Shown: positions 5,023 through 22,554 of the stretch, in pieces
How the letters are laid out: every line of letters starts with the position of its first letter
How positions within the stretch are numbered: position 1 is the first letter of the stretch
Source: Epithemia pelagica
Taxonomy: Eukaryota > Protista > Bacillariophyta
Length of the DNA stretch: 64,000 bases
NCBI GenBank assembly: GCA_946965045.2
Contig: OX337231.1
Span: forward strand, 310,001-374,000
Reading direction: 5' to 3'
Made by a program: the position numbers and the translations under genes
Notes under the pieces: generated by a model
Seen by the model: the letters and a program-made list of their open reading frames with translations, nothing else
Databases searched by the model: none
What the model was told of the DNA's origin: nothing

Positions 5023-5622
5023 TCATGCTGCTGGATGGTCCATGGTCCGTTTTTGATTTTCCTCGTCATTGTTACCCGTCGAATAATGGTCATCTTCTCC
5101 CTCGTTCCGAGGGACGGTGGAGGGACGAAATGGGAATGGTGGTATGATGGTTGGACATGGATCGCTCTTTGTATCCTTTGGACGGTGGGGACCACTTTCT
5201 GGCATCGAATCATTTGTTTCTCGGAAAGTGCTCGTTGTGGCGGAAGGTGTGTCCTGGTCTTTCTTGTTGTTGGTTGGTTGTTCCTTGTGGTGGTAGAGTC
5301 TCGACAAATGGATCAATGCCATGACGAGAACGAGTCCCACGGCAAGGCCCACAATGACAAACAAGGCAGTCGTGAGAAAGTTGAATGACAAGGTACCAAA
5401 GGAATCCTCCTCCTCCTCGGGCGACTTGCTTTCCTGTTGGTCGCCGTTGTCTAGACGTTGTGGTTCGGGGGAACTCGAGGGTGCTCCTCTTTCCAAGGAT
5501 GACCCACCACCGACTCGGCGAGCATGAATCAAGTCCATCATCAGCGAAATCGTGACGAAACGCAATTCCCATGTACGTTTCCATCCATGACACAAAGTAA
5601 CATTTGAGTTTGTTTGCATCAT
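5023..5622 (-). CDS. Single-pass membrane protein, copy 1; C-terminus frameshifted relative to copy 2
   Basis: TM segment FLTTALFVIVGLAVGLVLVMALIHL. The T-run near 5058 is one base shorter than in copy 2, giving NQKRTMDHPAA* instead of KSKTDHGPSSSMRS... Confidence 0.55.
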   Translation of the reverse strand: MMQTNSNVTLCHGWKRTWELRFVTISLMMDLIHARRVGGGSSLERGAPSSSPEPQRLDNGDQQESKSPEEEEDSFGTLSFNFLTTALFVIVGLAVGLVLVMALIHLSRLYHHKEQPTNNKKDQDTPSATTSTFRETNDSMPESGPHRPKDTKSDPCPTIIPPFPFRPSTVPRNEGEDDHYSTGNNDEENQKRTMDHPAA

Positions 5623-11723: not shown

Positions 11724-11819
11724 ATGTCAAATGACAACTCGATCTCGAACCTCGAACATGTTTTTTTTCTTTTTTTTTTTGTCGTTTGTGCAAGAAAACG
11801 ACCGTTATACCATGTCGCA

Positions 11820-11959
11820 TGTGCGTCAGCGACAGGACACTCAGGTAGCTACACGTAGTCTAGCTAGATCACACTAGCTATGTCTAGGAGTCTGCCAACA
11901 GCAGCCATGGAGCTCAGAGTTTTTGGAGCAACGCAATCTCTATCAAGTTTGCTGTTGGT
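11820..11959 (+). repeat. Split direct repeat A1 (140 bp)
   Basis: Identical to 21855-21994. Confidence 0.97.
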
Positions 11960-14900
11960 GTTTTTCTTCCTTTCTTCTTTCTTTCTTGTCTTTGCCTTTG
12001 CTTCCTTTGTCATGTCGTTATCTTTCGCTATTAATCCTACCCTTCGCGGATTAATCTCTCCCGATACGACCCAGTCGTTCCTTTCGTTTTCCCCCTCTGG
12101 TTTGTTCAAGCCTGTGGCATCCACCACAACCTATCCAAATCAGTTCTCCGGCATGTCTCCTCTTCACCCTACCGATCTCCAAAACTCTAAAGACTTTATT
12201 TCCTTGTCCCCTGAAGAAAAATCCAAGGAAATCCAGAAGGAATTTTTGGCCAATCTTCTTTCCTTGAATTTTGGGCCAAATAATTCCTCTCCCGACGCTA
12301 CCGTAGTTACTTCCCCTGCCAAGTATGCCCTGGCTGCAGACTCACCTACTATTGCCGGCTTCCTAGCCGTTGTCCAGCTTGACTCGGCTCCCACCACCGA
12401 TCCCAGCAAGCTTTCCTCCAAAATCCCACCCCCATCCGGCCCTTACCTGGTTGTCCTCGGGCCCACGGCGTTTGCCTTCAACGGAAAAGGCTTGCAAGCA
12501 CATGTATTTTCCGATACCCCCCAGAAAATCAGCTCCTTGCAGTTTTGTTTTCCTACAACGTTAATTGCCCCCGCGTTCGCTTTCCAATCGGGCATCCGTC
12601 CCCAATCCATTTCACAACTTAACCCTTACTCATGGATTACTTCCCACCCCAGTTCCATACTGGCCTCCCTCCGTGCTCACCGAGCCCTATTTTCCACTGT
12701 TATCCTTGAACAGTCTACGTCACGCCTCCACTCGCCTGACGACCCGTGGCATTCTCTTTGGATCCCCTCCCAAGACTCCCCCCCCCCACATGCCCATCAA
12801 ATTTTCTCGCGCCTCCATCGCGTCGACGAACCCATTCTCACAATTCCCGTTGAGAACACTTCTCCTATCGAGGGCTCCTGGATTGCTCTTTCCGCCCTTC
12901 CCCTTCCTCGTCATCATCATCTTCCTATTGGTCTCCTTTTCGATCCTGCCTCCATTCCTGACTCCGCCAGTTTAATTAACGCTATTCTTGGTTGGAATCA
13001 AACCTACAACCCGATGCCAGCCACTCGTTCTTCCCATCTCAAAGACTTGGCAACAACTCTCTCTTGGCTTGACGTCCCTTTTGTCAACGATTGGCTCCTC
13101 ACCGTGAGTCAACGCGCCGACGACTTTGCTACTGTTTGGCACACTTCCAAGCAGATAGCATCCGACCTCACCACCCTCAAGAACGTCCCCATCTCTACCA
13201 ACCTTCCCCGTTCTTATCCGGCTCGTATCCACCCTTATGAAGCCCTGTTTGTGCATCCTTTCTTCTCCCTTACAACCAAGCTTTTCTCAGATGCACTCCT
13301 CCAAAACACTCCGTCCCATACCATGCGAACCAAATTCTTCACTTTCTTTCGGGAGAAAGCAAACATGCTATCCTCCCAAGACGTCGACCTGTTCCTCCCT
13401 CAAAACATCCCTCACGTGGACAACACCCACACATACGTTCCTTTCCTCTTTCGCCCTCAAACACAGTCGTGGTCCACCTCCTACGGTTTCAAATCCTTTT
13501 CTTCCTTTGATGTCCAAAAATACCTTCCGGATTTTTTGAATCACCTCCCAAACGATCATATCGCTCAACGCGCCATATCCACCCCACACGAGCGGTCACC
13601 ATCTTCGTCCCTCAACCCACCCCAACCCAACACGGTTACCCGTTTGAATGTCGATTCCCCGGACAAACCCTCGCAAAAAAACCCTCCTTCCTCTCCCCAG
13701 ACACCGGAAGTTCGACCATTCCCTCTGGAACCTCCCGCAGAAAGCCTCTCTCGTCGTCCTACAGCCTTTCACCCTCCAACGGCTCGCATTCCCTCACCAG
13801 CAGCCCTGGACCCCTCGCCACGGTTTCCTGCCCCAGTCCCTGTCTCTCGTGCTCCTCTGCAACCCCAGCAGATGGAACCACAACAGCGTGCTCCTCCACC
13901 CCCTCAGCAGCTGGAACCACCGCAGCCGCCACCTCAACCCCATCAGAATCGTCTCCTCGTCGGTCCGGACCCACCGCCGTTTCCCACCCAAACCTCCATT
14001 CAGCACCTTCCGCCTCGTCCTCCCTCGCGACAGGAGCATTTCCTCCCCCCCCTTCCTCCCCCCCGCCTCCAGCGGTCTCCTTTCACCTCTACAGCCAATG
14101 CCTACTCCAACGCCTCTCCTCATGCACCCCACAACCCACCACGTCGACCCACTCATTATCACCCAGCCTCTCCAGCCATGGAGTCCTACCACTCCCAATC
14201 CTTCAACCCCTTGGCGCACCAACGTCAGGCCTGGGACGCACCCCTGGTTTCCACCACTACCTCACCCTGGTATCTCCCGGTTGACAACCCAACTTGGTTT
14301 ACGAGCACACGGCTCAAATATGTGCATTCCACCTTGGCTTCCTCCGCGTATCTTCCCCTCATCCGACGCACCATGGAAGAGCGCGGTCAATTTACTTTTG
14401 ACCGCTTTATTTTCCAGGACACAGACCAACTCCCACCTCATGTAGTCCAATGGGCCTTCCTGGGCATCGTTGCTCTACCTACTGATCTACGTTTGGTTGA
14501 CCCCAACTTGCCCACAACCACGAGACGTCCCTCCTATTCCCACGAGCTTCTCCATACCCCCAGCCATCTCAACAACGATTGGCTGCGCCAAGTTCTGCCC
14601 TACGCAGGCGCTGATCATCGCAGCTCTGCCGCCGAGGTAGCGGCCATTGACCTCCTCGCCGCCGCCATTGAAGCTTCCAAATACCCGGTGGCTCCGTTCC
14701 GCGTCGATTTTTCTCAGTCTTTCCTTCACGCAGAAGCCCCGCGTAAAGCACTGAGAACATTCCGAATCAACGCAGGTCAGACTCTTCATCTCGACGACCC
14801 TAAGTCCTTATATCTATCCCTTACTCCTTGGCACTTCCTATGGTCCATCCCCTTGTCCCCAGAGGGTCGCCTCCCGCAACAAGGTCTCTCCTGCACCCAG

Positions 14901-15983
14901 TTTAAGCTGTTCTTCCATCATATTGTGTTTTTCTTAAACACAGTACTCACCAACGACGACTCCTTCCCCCAATTCCCTCCAGGTTTTAGCCCCTTTCTTC
15001 TCCGCGGTCCCCTTGCCGGTCAATTGCTTTGGGCAGCTCATCAGTTTGATCAAGCTCAAACTCGAGATGCATGGTCGACATTGGCTTCCTCGCAACCCAG
15101 TCACACGCTACAATTGTCTCAAGCCCTTCTCCATCACACCTGTGACCTGTTTCAACAATTCCTCCGCTGGGGCGCCCAGAATCGTACCAAAATAGCTTGC
15201 CCTGCCACCGCAGACCCTGAAGGCTTTGTTCCCCAGTGCACTCTCATCTACGATGTGAGCCCGCACTCAACCGACTCAAATCTCACCTACTGTTTGGATT
15301 GGAGATCCACCTTTACCCTATTATTTACGGCTCCTACAATACTCTCCCACCAACACACCAACTCCATGTCACCCTTGTTTTGCCGCTCCACCCCCAACTA
15401 TCTCCTACCATCTCGTCCTGATCACCGGGGTGACTCTCGTTCTCCTCTAGAACGCTACGATCGTGCCCAACGGCGTCGCTCTCCCTCGGACCGTCCTCCT
15501 GACCGTGCTGCCGACCAACCACCGCCCAAGCGTGCTCGTTCTGACTCCGCTCAACCCCAGCGTCGCCCTGGCCAAAAAGCTCTCGTCCCGCTTGTCACCC
15601 TCACCGCGGCAGGGAAGGAACGTTATACCCACTCAGGTAAGCTCCTTGCCGACCTCGCGTCTTCCCTCACCATTCCCCGTTTCGACCAAAAGCAATATTG
15701 CTTTATGTACATCGACAAGAACTCTGTTGTCGGGTGCACCGGTCCCCATCGTTCACGCACAAACTCGGAAGGCCAACCGTTGCAATGCAATCGACACCAC
15801 GTCTGCCTTTCTCCCCAGGCTATCTCCAACTGGCCCCAATCCTCCCTTAAACCGCTCTGGGAGTTCTGTCACCATGATCGCGTTCGACACCTTCTCCAAC
15901 CTACACCGGAATTTGCAGCCCACATGGCTTCAGACCGTCCGAACCGTCCAAACGCCCCTCAACAACCCCCGCCCTCGTCGTGA
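11880..15983 (+). CDS. gag: ORF1, gag-like protein of the YR retrotransposon (start may be 12012); Pro-rich middle, C-terminal Cys/His cluster
   Basis: Position between A1 and RT. Cluster YCFMY..GCTGPH..CNRHHVC. The gag assignment is positional. Confidence 0.7.
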   Translation: MSRSLPTAAMELRVFGATQSLSSLLLVFFFLSSFFLVFAFASFVMSLSFAINPTLRGLISPDTTQSFLSFSPSGLFKPVASTTTYPNQFSGMSPLHPTDLQNSKDFISLSPEEKSKEIQKEFLANLLSLNFGPNNSSPDATVVTSPAKYALAADSPTIAGFLAVVQLDSAPTTDPSKLSSKIPPPSGPYLVVLGPTAFAFNGKGLQAHVFSDTPQKISSLQFCFPTTLIAPAFAFQSGIRPQSISQLNPYSWITSHPSSILASLRAHRALFSTVILEQSTSRLHSPDDPWHSLWIPSQDSPPPHAHQIFSRLHRVDEPILTIPVENTSPIEGSWIALSALPLPRHHHLPIGLLFDPASIPDSASLINAILGWNQTYNPMPATRSSHLKDLATTLSWLDVPFVNDWLLTVSQRADDFATVWHTSKQIASDLTTLKNVPISTNLPRSYPARIHPYEALFVHPFFSLTTKLFSDALLQNTPSHTMRTKFFTFFREKANMLSSQDVDLFLPQNIPHVDNTHTYVPFLFRPQTQSWSTSYGFKSFSSFDVQKYLPDFLNHLPNDHIAQRAISTPHERSPSSSLNPPQPNTVTRLNVDSPDKPSQKNPPSSPQTPEVRPFPLEPPAESLSRRPTAFHPPTARIPSPAALDPSPRFPAPVPVSRAPLQPQQMEPQQRAPPPPQQLEPPQPPPQPHQNRLLVGPDPPPFPTQTSIQHLPPRPPSRQEHFLPPLPPPRLQRSPFTSTANAYSNASPHAPHNPPRRPTHYHPASPAMESYHSQSFNPLAHQRQAWDAPLVSTTTSPWYLPVDNPTWFTSTRLKYVHSTLASSAYLPLIRRTMEERGQFTFDRFIFQDTDQLPPHVVQWAFLGIVALPTDLRLVDPNLPTTTRRPSYSHELLHTPSHLNNDWLRQVLPYAGADHRSSAAEVAAIDLLAAAIEASKYPVAPFRVDFSQSFLHAEAPRKALRTFRINAGQTLHLDDPKSLYLSLTPWHFLWSIPLSPEGRLPQQGLSCTQFKLFFHHIVFFLNTVLTNDDSFPQFPPGFSPFLLRGPLAGQLLWAAHQFDQAQTRDAWSTLASSQPSHTLQLSQALLHHTCDLFQQFLRWGAQNRTKIACPATADPEGFVPQCTLIYDVSPHSTDSNLTYCLDWRSTFTLLFTAPTILSHQHTNSMSPLFCRSTPNYLLPSRPDHRGDSRSPLERYDRAQRRRSPSDRPPDRAADQPPPKRARSDSAQPQRRPGQKALVPLVTLTAAGKERYTHSGKLLADLASSLTIPRFDQKQYCFMYIDKNSVVGCTGPHRSRTNSEGQPLQCNRHHVCLSPQAISNWPQSSLKPLWEFCHHDRVRHLLQPTPEFAAHMASDRPNRPNAPQQPPPSS

Positions 15984-16040
15984 CTACCGGCACATCATCG
16001 CCCAGGTTCGACTTGCGCCCGTTCGCCGTGGTCTGATGCA

Positions 16041-18893
16041 ATGCCTCCCACTTCACCAGAGAAATTTTATCCCACCTCTACGGCAGATCTTCTCCTCTCC
16101 CTTCCCGCTCCCACTACTGAGGCTGTCCCTACTGTCCCCAAACTACCAGTATTTCCTTCTCACCCACGTGCTGCCCCCTCTCGGGTCTCCTATGAGTTGC
16201 CAACGTTGCACACGGTGTTAACCACCGTCAACCCCTTTTTGACCGACGCCGATCGCTCCCAACTCCTCCTTGCCTCTTCCTCCTTGGTGCCCAACTGGGG
16301 AATTCTTCCCCTGTTCCCTCTCTGGTCGTTCACACACCATCGCAAACGAATTGGTTTCGGTCCGGACCGTCTCAACGTCGGCACATCCCATGCTGCTCCT
16401 GACGGCACTCCACTTGCGGCAACCGCACCCCATGTTGTTTCCCCTGAATTGCTCGGCCACTACGCATGGGATTTTTTGTCCCCACAGGACCAACAAAACC
16501 TAGTCGCCTCCTCGCCAAGCTTCCACTTCTATCATCGTCTCCGCGTTGCTGCTGCTCATGGCACCTCTCTCGCTGTCTGTCGCATACCCCCCTGCGAAGA
16601 CAAATCCCAACCCCTTCCATTCCGTAAGGCTTTTCTGCTTGCCGTTGCCCTTTGTCGTGCAAACTTTGTCTATGCGGACATGTACCGCTGGCTTGGCGGA
16701 ATCTACAATAATCATCACAGACGCCTGGCAGACACCTTCGACATCATTGACCGCGTCAAAGCTTTTGAGCCCCCACCGGACTATCCACGGTTGGACTATG
16801 CCCGCACTTGGCAACTTTTTCACCTGGGCGCCCCTCTCGCAGGCCACTATTCCTGTAGTCGCGTTGCCGTTTCTCAACGCAACCTCCTTGACAACTACCC
16901 CGGGGTCCAAGAAAACTTAGAGGAAATCACCAAAAAGTTCAAGAAAGAGGAACAGCTACAGTATCATCTTTTCCTTCCCCGAATTATCTGGCGGTTCCTC
17001 CCCGGTCTTTTCCTTTCACTCATTAACTGGGTAGCGCCCAAACCCCACCGCATCGGCGACACCGGCCGCTTGTGCATCGATCCAAGCTCCAAAATCACAG
17101 ACACTGATGACGGCAACACCAATGCCCAAATTCCAGATGCTGGACATGACGATGACTGTAACCCCGCGGTGGCTTACGGCACGGCTTTCCTACGCTTTTT
17201 GCGGTACATCTACAATCTGCGTATTGACCATCCCTCGGAAGACATACTGCTCAGCGCCGATGATATCAGTGCCGCCTTCCGTCGGGTCACATACAACCCC
17301 AACGCTGCCTTAGCATTTGCAAGCGTCCTCGGCTGGTTCCTAATCATACCCATTGGAATGATTTTTGGCGCCAAAAACAGTCCTTCCTACTACATGCTAC
17401 CGGGGGAGCTACGAGCCCATCTCTCTCGTTACCTTGCCGAGCTCACTTCCGCTCGTACTCTCTTGGCGGACACCATTGCTATCCCACCCCCTCCGTCCCC
17501 CCGCACCCTCAGAACCTTAACGACCGCCACTCCCGACGCTCTCAATCAAGGCACCTCCCACTTGTTAGCATCCCAACCGTCCTCCTTTCCTCGTCCGGTG
17601 TATGCTCCGTTCGTTGACGACACCGGTGGAGCGGCCATCCGCTCGGAGATCCACCGGTTAGTCAATAGCAGTATTCTCGCCGCATACGTCACCTTCGGCT
17701 TCCCCGACGAAGACCCCCATCGACCCGACCCTATTAATCCGATAAAATTTGTGCGTGACATCAGTCACAGCCTGAAATTCCTGGGGTATATCATCAACAC
17801 TCGAACTATGACAATTTCTTGGCCGTCCCATAAACAGACACAACTACAGGTCTATCTTCAACGCGCCCTCGATCTTCCCACCACGCCCTCCGACGGGCGT
17901 CGGCTTTCACCGCAAATGGCGGCCACGATTCTGGGCCTCGTCCGTCACAGCGCCCCAGTCTCACTCTTGGGCATCTACTACACGTTATCCCTACAGTATG
18001 CACTCAACGACCGCCTCCGTGCCACCGCAGCAGCAGGCAAATCCACCCGTGCCGCCTCCTTTTGGCACAAAACCCGGTTCACCCTCAACCGAGAAACCGT
18101 TATGGACCTCCGAACGCTCTTGGCCACCCTCCATTCTTCTCGGACCCACATTTGGACCCGTCCCATCGCTTTATGCATCCCGCGGGTTTCGCAATTTGAA
18201 ATTTTGGGCGACGCCTCCATTGAAGGGCTGGGAGGCTGGTTATCCACCCACTACCCCTTCATGTGGAGACTGACCAAACCCGACTTACTTCGCCTGGGCT
18301 TCATCCTGCCAAAAGATATGCAGTCCACCAAATTATCCGATCCAACTCAAGACACGCCCGATGCCCTGTGGCACATCAACTTGCTTGAATTCGTCGTCCT
18401 TCTCATAAACTTCTGGTTCCTGCAGCGAGTGGCCTCTCACGCCACACCGCAACCCCAGACCCTTGTCATCTCCATGCGCACCGACAACACGTCGGCGCTC
18501 TCGTGGCTCTCCCATGCCGCCCGTGCCAAGCGGCCCGCAATTCGTCGTCTTGCTCGTCTTTTTCAAGCCATGCTCACATCTGCCCCTATTCCCGTTCAAT
18601 TACAGGCCTCGCATATTGCGGGCGAGCTCAATCACAATGCCGACCTGTTGTCCCGCCCGTCCCTTGCGCCCACTTGGGCCTCCGTTATCGAGCAGTCCAA
18701 GCCAGTGCTGGACCCATCCACCGCCTACCGCGTGCCCTCCAGGTTGCTATCAGTGATATTAACAAGCTTCAAATTCAACAGGACCGAGGACGAACTAGGA
18801 ACAAGAATGATCGAACTTTGGACTCTCGAGGCGCTCACTTTTCCCGATGGTCCGCTCGCAATCACCTCACCCCTGAACTTTTATCTCGCCTGA
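16041..18893 (+). CDS. pol: Reverse transcriptase + RNase H (DIRS/Ngaro type)
   Basis: RT: ADDISAAFRRV, PIGMIFGAKNSP, FVDD. RNase H: GDASIEGLGG, HINLLE, TDNTSAL, HIAGELNHNADLLSR. Confidence 0.95.
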   Translation: MPPTSPEKFYPTSTADLLLSLPAPTTEAVPTVPKLPVFPSHPRAAPSRVSYELPTLHTVLTTVNPFLTDADRSQLLLASSSLVPNWGILPLFPLWSFTHHRKRIGFGPDRLNVGTSHAAPDGTPLAATAPHVVSPELLGHYAWDFLSPQDQQNLVASSPSFHFYHRLRVAAAHGTSLAVCRIPPCEDKSQPLPFRKAFLLAVALCRANFVYADMYRWLGGIYNNHHRRLADTFDIIDRVKAFEPPPDYPRLDYARTWQLFHLGAPLAGHYSCSRVAVSQRNLLDNYPGVQENLEEITKKFKKEEQLQYHLFLPRIIWRFLPGLFLSLINWVAPKPHRIGDTGRLCIDPSSKITDTDDGNTNAQIPDAGHDDDCNPAVAYGTAFLRFLRYIYNLRIDHPSEDILLSADDISAAFRRVTYNPNAALAFASVLGWFLIIPIGMIFGAKNSPSYYMLPGELRAHLSRYLAELTSARTLLADTIAIPPPPSPRTLRTLTTATPDALNQGTSHLLASQPSSFPRPVYAPFVDDTGGAAIRSEIHRLVNSSILAAYVTFGFPDEDPHRPDPINPIKFVRDISHSLKFLGYIINTRTMTISWPSHKQTQLQVYLQRALDLPTTPSDGRRLSPQMAATILGLVRHSAPVSLLGIYYTLSLQYALNDRLRATAAAGKSTRAASFWHKTRFTLNRETVMDLRTLLATLHSSRTHIWTRPIALCIPRVSQFEILGDASIEGLGGWLSTHYPFMWRLTKPDLLRLGFILPKDMQSTKLSDPTQDTPDALWHINLLEFVVLLINFWFLQRVASHATPQPQTLVISMRTDNTSALSWLSHAARAKRPAIRRLARLFQAMLTSAPIPVQLQASHIAGELNHNADLLSRPSLAPTWASVIEQSKPVLDPSTAYRVPSRLLSVILTSFKFNRTEDELGTRMIELWTLEALTFPDGPLAITSPLNFYLA

Positions 18894-19915
18894 CCGATAA
18901 CGAATGCATACACATCCTCCACCTTTACCTACATCACGTCACAAACGGCGAGAACTACTACAGGAGGTCCGACCTAGCGGCAGATACCATTCAATCTTAC
19001 GTAACTGCTGCCCATTCCGCACTTCAGGTTGCCCTCAACCGCCCTGTTAACATCTCCAACCCAACCAACTCAACCCTGCTACACCCACTGCTATCCGACC
19101 CATTACAATTTCATCGTCGCTGGCAACGTCCGCGCGATCGTAAGGAACCCATCACCGATGCCATCCTTAGCGTGCTCTATTACCGTGCAGTCGGGGCCCC
19201 TCCTTCGTCACTTGACGCAACTCTCTTCGACTGGGTCCGGCTTGGCCTCTTCACCGGCTCCCGTGCCAGTGAATTTGCCCAAACCTCTGGCTCAAAGTTT
19301 GTCTTTGCGGCCGTTCCCAATTGTCCCAATGATCCATCCTGGAACGATCAACCTATTGCCTTTGTCTCCAGTGACTTCGTCTTCTTGACTCAAGCAAACG
19401 ACATGCTTCCACTTGCTTCCCTCCCCAAACACGAACACACCGTCTCGGCAGTCCAGATCCGCTTTCGGCATGACAAAAGCGCTCATAATTTCACGAAACG
19501 CATCTTCCGTCGTTCCGGCCACTCATATCTCTGTCCCGTGCTCGCATCCTGTTCAATTGCCCGCCGCTCCCTCTCCCTCCAAGTCGGAGCCCACCTGCCC
19601 CTCGCCTCCTATCAGGTCAAACCGGGGAAAATAGCCTACCTTCGGTCGGCCGATATCATCAAAGCCCTCCGTCAAGCTTGCCTGGAGGCGTACCCAAACC
19701 CTCATAATTACCACCGGCGTCACGCCCACTTGCTTGTCGCCCATTCTACACGCGTCACAGCCGCTGTAGCGTTGTGGAACGTTCAAGTTCCCCTTCCCCA
19801 AATTGCCTTCCGACTCCGGTGGCAAGAAGACTCGATCAAACACTACCTCCGTGATTGCTCGAAAGCAATTGGTCCTCATAGTCAAGCGGCCATTGCGGGC
19901 GTCCTAAATATTTAA
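18503..19915 (+). CDS. Tyrosine recombinase, overlapping pol in the -1 frame; true start unknown
   Basis: Catalytic set: R (FTGSRASEF), HxxR (HSTR), RW (FRLRW), Y (SIKHYLR). The track start at 18503 is GTG. Confidence 0.93.
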   Translation: MALPCRPCQAARNSSSCSSFSSHAHICPYSRSITGLAYCGRAQSQCRPVVPPVPCAHLGLRYRAVQASAGPIHRLPRALQVAISDINKLQIQQDRGRTRNKNDRTLDSRGAHFSRWSARNHLTPELLSRLTDNECIHILHLYLHHVTNGENYYRRSDLAADTIQSYVTAAHSALQVALNRPVNISNPTNSTLLHPLLSDPLQFHRRWQRPRDRKEPITDAILSVLYYRAVGAPPSSLDATLFDWVRLGLFTGSRASEFAQTSGSKFVFAAVPNCPNDPSWNDQPIAFVSSDFVFLTQANDMLPLASLPKHEHTVSAVQIRFRHDKSAHNFTKRIFRRSGHSYLCPVLASCSIARRSLSLQVGAHLPLASYQVKPGKIAYLRSADIIKALRQACLEAYPNPHNYHRRHAHLLVAHSTRVTAAVALWNVQVPLPQIAFRLRWQEDSIKHYLRDCSKAIGPHSQAAIAGVLNI

Positions 19916-19983
19916 CTACCACTATTCACATCAAATGTATCTCACTATTCTATTATGGTATCACTATTTCGTCCGCTCCAACC

Positions 19984-20562
19984 TTAAATCCTCGCTATGT
20001 TCTTGTCCGCTCGAGAATAACGCACGCCATTGTCGGTCTCCACGTGGATACGTGCGTCTGTTACCTTCACCACCCGCCCAGTTGGGTCAGCGGGATCGTT
20101 TGGGTTTCGAATTCGAACCCGCTCCCCAACTTTGAAACGCTCCTCCGATCCGCGGCTCGCCCGCCGACCCCGAAATCCACCTTGTGCTCGTGGACTCGTA
20201 CGTCCACGGGGACTCGGTCCACCCACCCCTTTGCTTGCCACTCGCCATCCCCATCTTCCTCCACGGGCCATCGACCCTTCCTCTCGGCCCCGTGGTGTCC
20301 CCTCTCGCAGTCCTACTCCATCGGGCTCCCATTCCCCCCCTCCTCCTCCGTCTGCCACAGCTGCGTTCGCTGCCGCCACCACATTAATCGCCTGCTGCAC
20401 TCTCCTCTCCGCCAATTCCTTCAATTCAAGCAATCGTCTAGAGATCTCCACTTGCCTCTCGGCCATCCGTCCCAACTCTCCCATAATCTCGGCCATCTGA
20501 GCCTGCCTATCCGCCATCTGATCCAGCTCGTCAATCAACTCGGCCATCTCCTCCATCTTCAT
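19984..20562 (-). CDS. Antisense ORF B inside the retrotransposon: coiled coil + RG/RGG-rich linker + KOW/SH3-like barrel
   Basis: ATG start. Heptad-like N-terminus. C-terminus FKVGERVRIRNP..TGRVVKVTDARIHVETDNG resembles KOW. Confidence 0.7.
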   Translation of the reverse strand: MKMEEMAELIDELDQMADRQAQMAEIMGELGRMAERQVEISRRLLELKELAERRVQQAINVVAAANAAVADGGGGGEWEPDGVGLREGTPRGREEGSMARGGRWGWRVASKGVGGPSPRGRTSPRAQGGFRGRRASRGSEERFKVGERVRIRNPNDPADPTGRVVKVTDARIHVETDNGVRYSRADKNIARI

Positions 20563-21563
20563 TCACTGTCTGATTCCAACTTCGACGCGCGTCCCGACGA
20601 ATCGCCAGACAGGACAACCACTTCCGGTAAATGTTTCTTCCACGACAACGGCTCGTCCTCTGTCGCCGTGTTTTCCCTAGTCGCCGTATTCTCCCTCGTA
20701 GGAGTTTCCTTAATCGATTTCTCCCTTGTGGGAGTTTCCTTGATCGACCCCAGGCCTTTCTCCTTGGGCGAAACACTCGCGCCCCTCTTCACAGGGGTAC
20801 TGCCCTTGCGCTGCTTCTTGGGTAGGGTACTGAAACCCGGTTGGCCCAACCACTCTTCCAAAGAACGCTTCTCGCGCTTCGAAAACGCTTCAAAAGTTCC
20901 TTTCCCTTCGGACCTCTTTTTACCCGCCTCGGGTTTCTTATCTTTTCGGTCGGCTGCTGCGGCAGCCGTCGCGGCTCTCCCTCCGGGAACTGGCACAGGC
21001 AATCCACGGCGGGCAGAGTTCTGCGCGAACAACTCACGAACAACGGCCACTTTTTGTTCCACAACCTCCTCTGCAGAAGGCCTTTCCCGTCCGCCAGCCA
21101 AGGCCAATCCACAAATCTGGTGGAAAACGACTTCTTGGTCTTCCGGGTGCGGAAACAACAACTCTAGAGCCACCACGACCTTCTTGTTGCTTGGAGATGC
21201 TCGTCGAAACACCGTTTCCACGAAGTCTTCCCCGTCTCCTCCCTCCTCCGCAAAAGTCTCACACACACGGGTCACTAGTCGATCGATCTCCGCTTGATGG
21301 TCGCCCACCAACTCTCGCACGTTTTTCTGCGTCTGAATCACCGACGCCTCTTTGGATGCAAGTATTCCGCCATGCACGTCTTCCAAATGTTGACGCTCTT
21401 GGGCGTGCAACACGCGAGTCTTATCCAGCTCTGTTTGCGCGATATCCACTCCTCCTAAAGCGCCGTGCAATTCTTTGCGTTGTGCCTCGACAACTGTTTT
21501 TAAACGATCCAGTTGTTCAGCCGTCGTTTCGCTTTCTTCTGTTCTCCGAGCTGCAGAACTCAT
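20559..21563 (-). CDS. Antisense ORF A inside the retrotransposon: N-terminal coiled coil, charged disordered tail
   Basis: 334-aa ATG-started ORF beginning 118 bp from B1. Its TGA overlaps the ATG of ORF B (ATGA). Confidence 0.7.
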   Translation of the reverse strand: MSSAARRTEESETTAEQLDRLKTVVEAQRKELHGALGGVDIAQTELDKTRVLHAQERQHLEDVHGGILASKEASVIQTQKNVRELVGDHQAEIDRLVTRVCETFAEEGGDGEDFVETVFRRASPSNKKVVVALELLFPHPEDQEVVFHQICGLALAGGRERPSAEEVVEQKVAVVRELFAQNSARRGLPVPVPGGRAATAAAAADRKDKKPEAGKKRSEGKGTFEAFSKREKRSLEEWLGQPGFSTLPKKQRKGSTPVKRGASVSPKEKGLGSIKETPTREKSIKETPTRENTATRENTATEDEPLSWKKHLPEVVVLSGDSSGRASKLESDSE

Positions 21564-21680
21564 CTCACCTCTTCCGCAACCGTATCTTTGTGCCCATGTC
21601 CTACGCCCTCTAATTGTCCTATCGGCTACTCCCTCACACTCCGCAGTCAGCTGTGGTGGCTAGTCAAGGCAAAGACATGT

Positions 21681-21856
21681 GGTGCAGACGCTAGAGGGTT
21701 AGATCCCGATGATCTACTCCTCAGCGTTTCCGCTGTTGGCAGGCTCCCGATGACTCCTAGTCATCAGAAGCCACAACCAACCAGCGGAGTCTTTCCCTAA
21801 AGCTACCAAAGGACTGCAGCGTTAGCAAGCAATTCGCCGAGGGCAGGCGGATTGTG
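21681..21856 (+). repeat. Split direct repeat B1 (176 bp)
   Basis: Identical to 22011-22186; shares the TG at 21855-21856 with A2. Confidence 0.97.
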
Positions 21857-21994
21857 TGCGTCAGCGACAGGACACTCAGGTAGCTACACGTAGTCTAGCT
21901 AGATCACACTAGCTATGTCTAGGAGTCTGCCAACAGCAGCCATGGAGCTCAGAGTTTTTGGAGCAACGCAATCTCTATCAAGTTTGCTGTTGGT
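21855..21994 (+). repeat. Split direct repeat A2 (140 bp)
   Basis: Identical to A1. Confidence 0.97.
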
Positions 21995-22010
21995 CCCACC
22001 ACTCCCTCCC

Positions 22011-22186
22011 GGTGCAGACGCTAGAGGGTTAGATCCCGATGATCTACTCCTCAGCGTTTCCGCTGTTGGCAGGCTCCCGATGACTCCTAGTCATCAGAAG
22101 CCACAACCAACCAGCGGAGTCTTTCCCTAAAGCTACCAAAGGACTGCAGCGTTAGCAAGCAATTCGCCGAGGGCAGGCGGATTGTG
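22011..22186 (+). repeat. Split direct repeat B2 (176 bp), right end of the element
   Basis: Identical to B1; separated from A2 by a 16-nt spacer. Confidence 0.97.
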
Positions 22187-22554
22187 CATCGAAAAACCTG
22201 CCATACGTGCAGCCGGCGCGCAGCCGATTTCATGATCATTTCTCTGAACGTTTCTTCGGTTGACCATGGGGGAAAATTATAACATGGCATTTGTAGTTGA
22301 TTACGTAATGGCTACTATCTTTTCTTTTACCATTTGCTCAATTGATCCATCATGATATACATGCATTGTCATGCGTGAACGCCATTCCTATTTTTCACCA
22401 TTGTTCGCATCTGTCTCTTGTTCTTGATCAGGAAAAAAATGAGAAGCGACTCTTCTCTCCCGAGAAAAGACGACACAAGAACTGAAGCGACAAGGGAAAA
22501 GAATTATCACAAAAGGATATAGAGGAGGATAACGACCTAACAACGCCAATAACC

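Follow-up and report, generated by a model that had tools for sequence, protein, structure and literature searches.

We analysed a 64,000-nucleotide stretch of the genome of the diatom Epithemia pelagica (GCA_946965045.2, contig OX337231.1, positions 310,001 to 374,000 of the forward strand; hereafter the window, to which coordinates refer unless another sequence is named). Between 11820 and 22186 the window holds an intact, recently active copy of a Ngaro-like tyrosine-recombinase (YR) retrotransposon of the DIRS order, 10.4 kb in length. Its first open reading frame (ORF), ORF1 (11880–15983, + strand), encodes 1367 amino acids and ends in a TGA codon, beyond which the same frame runs on into the polymerase gene Pol (16041–18893, + strand; 950 amino acids from the first ATG, 969 codons counted from the TGA). 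From comparison with related elements we consider it probable that this stop codon, together with the C that follows it, is a programmed readthrough site that would yield an ORF1–Pol fusion protein.

The element ends in exact split direct repeats in the order A1...B1-A2-B2, in which A1 is identical to A2 and B1 to B2, in agreement with the Ngaro type; this architecture is typical of Ngaro, PAT and VIPER elements. A1 (11820–11959, + strand) is an exact 140-nt direct repeat of A2 and contains the ORF1 ATG (11880). B1 (21681–21856), A2 (21855–21994) and B2 (22011–22186), on the same strand, complete the structure at the 3' end. Pol stops about 80 residues past its RNase H part, and a Pfam scan of the ORFs of the element gave no methyltransferase match; a methyltransferase domain in that place would be expected in DIRS1 and PAT but not in Ngaro elements. 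The scan, which covered ORF1, Pol, ORF3, ORF4 and one overlapping ORF, returned nothing at E <= 0.01.

ORF1 begins with a hydrophobic N-terminus (partly encoded in A1), which is followed by a long middle part rich in proline and by a helical, conserved C-terminal half with a C..C..C..H knuckle motif that is kept across lineages. It terminates right behind a conserved motif of the LxPTxxF type, and homologous ORF1s lie in frame 5' of Pol in many lineages. The AlphaFold (AF2) model of the C-terminal half (predicted local distance difference test, pLDDT, 65) found no fold match at E < 1 in a Foldseek search of the PDB. We call ORF1 Gag-like by its position alone; neither a capsid-like fold nor a CCHC knuckle was identified. 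Its 1367 aa are an unusual length among the Gag-like ORFs of YR retrotransposons.

Within Pol we located a reverse transcriptase (RT) with an FVDD motif (∼17028–17900, + strand) and an RNase H (∼18183–18650, + strand). An AF2 model of Pol, built from an alignment of 23 related sequences, reached a mean pLDDT of 83.5. Its best Foldseek matches in the PDB were the RTs of cauliflower mosaic virus, xenotropic and Moloney murine leukaemia viruses (XMRV and MMLV), Ty3, foamy virus and human immunodeficiency virus (HIV), with a best E of 7e-9 at a Foldseek probability of 1.0. Invariant columns of the 23-sequence alignment comprise D408, F524-V525-D526-D527, D724, E783, D815 and D868, and the D-E-D-D set is invariant in the RNase H part. 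The model therefore predicts that Pol is an RT plus RNase H of the long terminal repeat (LTR) retroelement type. It was the fold match alone that gave this identity, since sequence searches of the PDB with Pol and with the 23-sequence profile gave no match, and Pfam RVT_1 appeared only as a weak match in 2 of the 23 relatives. Upstream of the RT, Pol residues 1–330 (16041–17030) include a conserved, confidently folded and mostly helical region of ∼250 residues that has no Pfam match.

ORF3 (18389–19915, + strand) is open in the −1 frame with respect to Pol, and the last 505 nt of Pol overlap with it; no X_XXY_YYZ heptamer was found in this overlap in the window element. A profile of ORF3 homologues matches Cre recombinase over the HxxR..W..Y region (E 0.007), residues R121, H281, R284, W307 and Y315 are invariant, and PF00589 was met in three of six homologues, below threshold only. 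This evidence, weak but specific, points to a tyrosine recombinase that would replace a DDE integrase. The first AUG of ORF3 lies at codon 339 (nt 19403), behind the conserved catalytic-Arg box; ORF3 homologues of other lineages begin with Met at a conserved N-terminus. Further 3', the + strand carries ORF4 (20044–21297, 417 aa; no Pfam match), and two antisense ORFs occupy 19984–20562 and 20559–21563.

The ORF1/Pol junction in near and distant relatives

The first-pass annotation of the window had proposed that ORF1 and Pol are joined through a leaky stop, and the in-frame layout on which this proposal rested is borne out. The TGA (15981–15983) is followed by CTA (15984–15986), the two codons together (15981–15986, + strand) forming the proposed leaky stop. 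No further stop occurs in the 19-codon (57-nt) spacer (15984–16040, + strand), which would be translated only upon readthrough, and from ATG 16041 the frame stays open to 18893. Taken alone, this arrangement does not exceed what chance would give, because the strand is pyrimidine-rich and stop-poor: the + strand is C-rich over 12000–22000 (GC skew −0.3 to −0.45), and at the off-frame stop density of 1.6–2.7% per codon a run of 19 codons is free of stops with a probability of 0.6–0.7. The significance of the junction therefore comes from the relatives of the element and not from the window by itself.

A search of the genome (60.5 Mb, 23 contigs) revealed ∼11 copies at 98–100% identity. All of them carry TGA-CTA and a spacer without insertions or deletions, despite substitutions nearby, and at least six have both ORF1 (1370–1372 open codons) and Pol (969 open codons) intact. 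Contigs from three public DNA runs showed neither a variant at the TGA nor a joined ORF1–Pol form, and a search for RNA runs that contain the element gave none. Conservation of the in-frame TGA-CTA, which the annotation had named as a check, was thus found in every near copy and in four further elements (L044, L047, L111 and L113). A copy on contig 2 (G000:C2:4242680-4250024; L026, L027 and L046) has undergone rearrangement or frameshifting: the matches to ORF1 and Pol are split over different frames, and Pol residues 385–774 are missing.

More diverged junctions were taken from families of the same genome (L043, L044, L045), from contigs of protein-search matches (L047–L052, L111–L113) and from a metagenome scan (L053–L110); for the lineage statistics only lineages with less than 65% Pol identity were counted. 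A single in-frame stop stands at the homologous place, directly behind the conserved C-terminal motif of ORF1, in the window family and 15 further elements. Pol identity among the in-frame lineages is mostly 32–52% (full span 32–63%). The junction reads TGA-CTA in the window family, L044, L047 and L111, TGA-CTAG in L113, TGA-CTC in L049 (Mayamaea pseudoterrestris), L063 and L067, TGA-CCC in L043 and L045, TGA-CAA in L053 and L058, TGA-CAG in L048, TGA-CGG in L056, TGA-AGG in L112 and TAG-GCC in L068. A sense codon at this position was found in none of the lineages compared, down to ∼33% Pol identity.

Three features of these junctions depart from chance. ORF1 and Pol are in frame with each other in 11 of 15 lineages (p 0.002 against an expectation of 1/3). 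The junction stop is TGA in 10 of the 11 in-frame lineages and TAG in the other, compared with TGA at the end of the Pol ORF in only 2 of 11 (Fisher p 0.002). Finally, C occupies position +4 in nine of the ten TGA junctions (p 0.001 at the highest local C content, 39%). The annotation had pointed to UGA-CUA as an established leaky motif. Of this, the shorter UGA-C proved to be conserved throughout the clade, whereas CUA after the stop recurs only in the subclade of the window (window family, L044, L047, L111 and L113). In-frame TGA-C was also present in three distant YR families of the same genome, at 22–24% RT identity (L114, TGA-CGC; L115, TGA-CAG; L116, TGA-CGC).

Two elements show peculiarities of their own. 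L068 (junction at L068:3323-3328) is the sole in-frame lineage without TGA; its TAG-G is as in murine leukaemia virus (MLV), and a hairpin starting at +8 has a z of −2.1 over 50 nt and −3.0 over 120 nt. In L047 (GCA_024449705.1) an additional in-frame TAA (2805–2807) splits ORF1 between two called genes of the same frame; the copy may have decayed, or the TAA may itself be a further site of recoding.

The position of the first AUG past the stop varies widely. The in-frame AUG nearest the stop lies at codons 14–20 in L047 (14), L044 (18) and the window family, at codon 36 in L056 and L058, at codons 58–66 in L049, L048 and L043, at codons 92–93 in L045 and L063 and at codon 196 in L053, and L068 has no in-frame AUG within 300 codons past its junction stop. 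In L053 and L068 the first AUG would fall inside the conserved, confidently folded part of Pol. As judged from this comparison, ATG 16041 is not conserved and Pol has no conserved start codon of its own. The spacer of the window family has too few variable sites for a test of selection, and we used L043 and L045, which align over 64 codons from the stop to the first AUG. Here pS, the synonymous proportion of differences, is 0.47 and pN, the nonsynonymous proportion, is 0.11 (pN/pS 0.23), a pattern that indicates purifying selection on these AUG-free codons as protein and argues that the codons between stop and AUG are translated in that frame. Such a stretch is reachable only by ribosomes that pass the stop, or by way of a non-AUG start.

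In lineages that are not in frame, Pol lies in the −1 frame and overlaps the end of ORF1, by 115 nt in L050, 55 nt in L051, 112 nt in L057, 13 nt in L066 and 70 nt in L081; in L061, an ambiguous contig, the frame may be +1. The metagenome element L050 carries U_UUU_UUA in the ORF1 frame (5439–5451 of that element), 9 nt 5' of the ORF1 stop. This is the classical, HIV-1-type −1 slippery heptamer, and we regard it as a candidate −1 frameshift site; a strict slippery heptamer was not found in the −1 lineages other than L050. The annotation had counted a different frame in related elements against readthrough. Some relatives are indeed out of frame, but a −1 overlap is an alternative recoding layout and we do not read it as a refutation. 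Either frame 0 with UGA-C or frame −1 is the pattern expected if Pol is always a recoded extension of ORF1, and it suggests that recoding from ORF1 is the general route to Pol in this clade. In a quick maximum-likelihood tree of Pol, the −1 lineages fall at three separate places in a 17-row ingroup that otherwise has in-frame TGA. The basal forks of this tree are poorly supported, which leaves the number and direction of the layout switches unsettled. That UGA-C readthrough is the ancestral and dominant means of expressing Pol in diatom Ngaro-like elements, and that −1 frameshifting took its place independently at least three times within one clade, is to our mind an evenly balanced proposition.

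Proposed readthrough and alternative routes to Pol

The layout of the junction, its conservation, the missing start of Pol and the coding constraint past the stop are direct observations; from them we infer the readthrough event, its efficiency and the tRNA used. In the mechanism that we propose, the full-length RNA of the element would serve as messenger and most ribosomes would terminate at UGA 15981, releasing the ORF1 protein. Since termination is weak at a UGA with C behind it (here in the form of CUA), a minority would decode the stop by means of a near-cognate tRNA. These ribosomes would continue in frame through the 19-codon spacer into the RT and RNase H, giving an ORF1–Pol fusion of ∼2337 residues, and the rate of leakage would determine how much enzyme is made relative to structural protein, as it does in gammaretroviruses and alphaviruses. 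A single C after UGA is reported as the readthrough signal of Sindbis virus (PMC3159437), and UGA-CUA as a short readthrough signal in fungal and animal genes (PMC4207609, PMC4359377).

Several observations weigh against readthrough at this codon. The in-frame layout of the window, if taken alone, has a chance of ∼0.2 (0.6–0.7 for the open spacer multiplied by 1/3 for the frame). Two lineages depart from the UGA-C rule, L112 with TGA-A and L068 with TAG-G, and many of the loci compared are single metagenome contigs or partly decayed copies. The window family has no 3' structure above chance. A possible stem 3' of the stop, to which the annotation had pointed, is indeed the ViennaRNA minimum-energy fold (15989–15997 paired with 16034–16038 and 16042–16045), but as a signal the stem (15989–16045) is unsupported. 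Its stability is no better than that of dinucleotide shuffles (z +0.67 over 80 nt, +0.23 over 120 nt and +0.5 in a separate run; the method evaluates nested folds, with pseudoknots outside it) and the fold is not common to L043, L044 and L045. A common variant, C to A at 16039, falls in the bulge of the stem and thus lends it no support by covariation. Any leak in the window family would consequently rest on the short UGA-CUA context alone. Lastly, in the retrotransposon Tca2 of Candida albicans the junction between gag and pol did not drive readthrough when placed in a yeast reporter, and a minor promoter was found in it (PMC2194720), a precedent which means that an in-frame UGA alone is no proof of readthrough by local context.

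The alternative that best survives, although we think it unlikely, is that Pol is made independently from AUG 16041, through a subgenomic RNA with a promoter in the end of ORF1, through internal entry or through reinitiation. The minor promoter in the Tca2 junction (PMC2194720) offers a model for the first of these routes, and an AUG 19 codons past the stop in the window family, with similarly early AUGs in L044 (codon 18) and L047 (codon 14), would supply the start. In L043, L045, L053 and L063, 66–196 codons pass before such a start is reached, in L068 more than 300, and the purifying selection on AUG-free codons past the stop speaks for translation upstream of any AUG. An independent start also leaves unexplained why Pol is found in frame 0 or −1, why the stop is TGA and why C follows at +4. 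Reinitiation after an ORF of 1367 codons is, moreover, not expected in eukaryotes.

Somewhat less probable still is a non-canonical bypass of the UGA, of the kind proposed for Tca2, that depends on signals beyond its immediate context. These could be an RNA element farther away, a factor that the retrotransposon itself encodes or an interaction of Pol with eRF1 as in MLV. The lack of significant local 3' structure in the window family and the Tca2 precedent would both fit such a mechanism. Several other lineages (L045, L047, L048, L056, L058 and L068) do have a hairpin starting 8–9 nt past the stop, with z between −1.8 and −3.2 over the first 50 nt; its occurrence in some lineages only implies that stimulators may differ between lineages. 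Their 8–9-nt spacing is reminiscent of the extended 3' elements in viruses that use readthrough (PMC3159437), but these hairpins are no more than a trend and the window family lacks them. What is conserved across lineages, on the other hand, is the short UGA-C context itself, and according to PMC3159437 and PMC4207609 this context is enough by itself in Sindbis virus and in genes of fungi and animals.

It is very improbable that the TGA is no recoding site at all, a view to which the window alone would lend itself (p ∼0.2) and which is contradicted by the presence of a stop in all copies and in lineages down to ∼33% Pol identity. A chance or recent nonsense mutation in what had been a single ORF was rejected, as a sense codon was met at the site in none of the lineages, and so was a selenocysteine codon, as an Rfam scan of 11800–22200 with E up to 10 found no selenocysteine insertion sequence (SECIS) and chance-level matches only. 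Removal of the codon by splicing was likewise rejected: it would not demand a common frame, a TGA or a C, and no joined form was seen in the DNA contigs.

Comparison with known systems

With programmed readthrough at UGA 15981, a recoding strategy known from other systems would operate in a group of elements and a host for which it seems not to have been described. Overlapping ORFs have been described in the DIRS order (a Ngaro-like element of Xenopus, PMC9210276; PMC6681497), and for Ngaro and VIPER 'usually no ORF overlaps' are reported (PMC3266345). Our literature search returned nothing that links Ngaro, DIRS or YR retrotransposons with readthrough; the founding Ngaro papers lay outside this search and an earlier mention in them is possible. 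If UGA-C readthrough is indeed the ancestral and dominant route to Pol in the diatom elements, it would be the first recoding signal described for the DIRS order and for diatoms. Control of the ratio of structural to enzymatic protein has hardly been studied in tyrosine-recombinase retrotransposons. UGA-C junctions that alternate with −1 overlaps would represent the same two recoding solutions that retroviruses use, and the diatom lineages form a natural series in which switches between readthrough and frameshifting can be studied. There are practical consequences as well. Gene callers split these elements into 'hypothetical proteins' that begin at arbitrary AUGs, and their RT is missed by Pfam. 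Should the short context alone be effective, it would make a handy, portable leaky stop for diatom engineering.

As an element, the retrotransposon of the window resembles Ngaro and other DIRS elements in its order of ORFs (Gag-like ORF1, RT/RNase H, YR) and in its split direct repeats A1...B1-A2-B2. It differs from them in its length of 10.4 kb with an unusually long ORF1 (1367 aa), and in that its RT, RNase H and YR are missed by the Pfam models.

Among viruses, the type II plant-virus signals UGA-CUA and UGA-CGG (PMC3159437) have counterparts in the CUA of the window's subclade and the CGG of L056. The nsP3/nsP4 junction of alphaviruses (Sindbis virus, Venezuelan equine encephalitis virus) likewise consists of a leaky UGA followed by C, and it delivers the polymerase as a minor fusion product, as we propose for the window element. 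The latter, in contrast, is a nuclear retrotransposon of an alga and not an RNA virus, and the extended 3' stem-loop that boosts alphavirus readthrough is without a supported counterpart in the window family.

Readthrough between Gag and Pol is classical in gammaretroviruses. In MLV, as in the window element, gag and pol share one frame with a single stop between them, and a Gag–Pol fusion governs how much enzyme is made relative to structural protein, as we propose for the ORF1–Pol fusion. The two also share the fold class of their RTs, those of MMLV and XMRV being among the best structural matches of the window Pol. MLV differs in that it relies on UAG-G and an obligatory 3' pseudoknot, in place of UGA-C without a supported structure (TAG-G was met only in L068). 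The window element, for its part, has a tyrosine recombinase in the place of the integrase, no protease and no DDE integrase.

Tca2, a Ty1/copia element, is the retrotransposon parallel, in which gag and pol lie in frame and are separated by a UGA (PMC2194720). The hexamer UGA CUA of the junction is also found in cellular genes of fungi and animals (peroxisomal isoforms, LDHB and MDH1), in which it acts with no long structure (PMC4207609, PMC4359377); L113 even carries UGA CUAG. In these genes readthrough adds short targeting extensions, whereas in the window element it would add the 969-residue polymerase of a mobile element.

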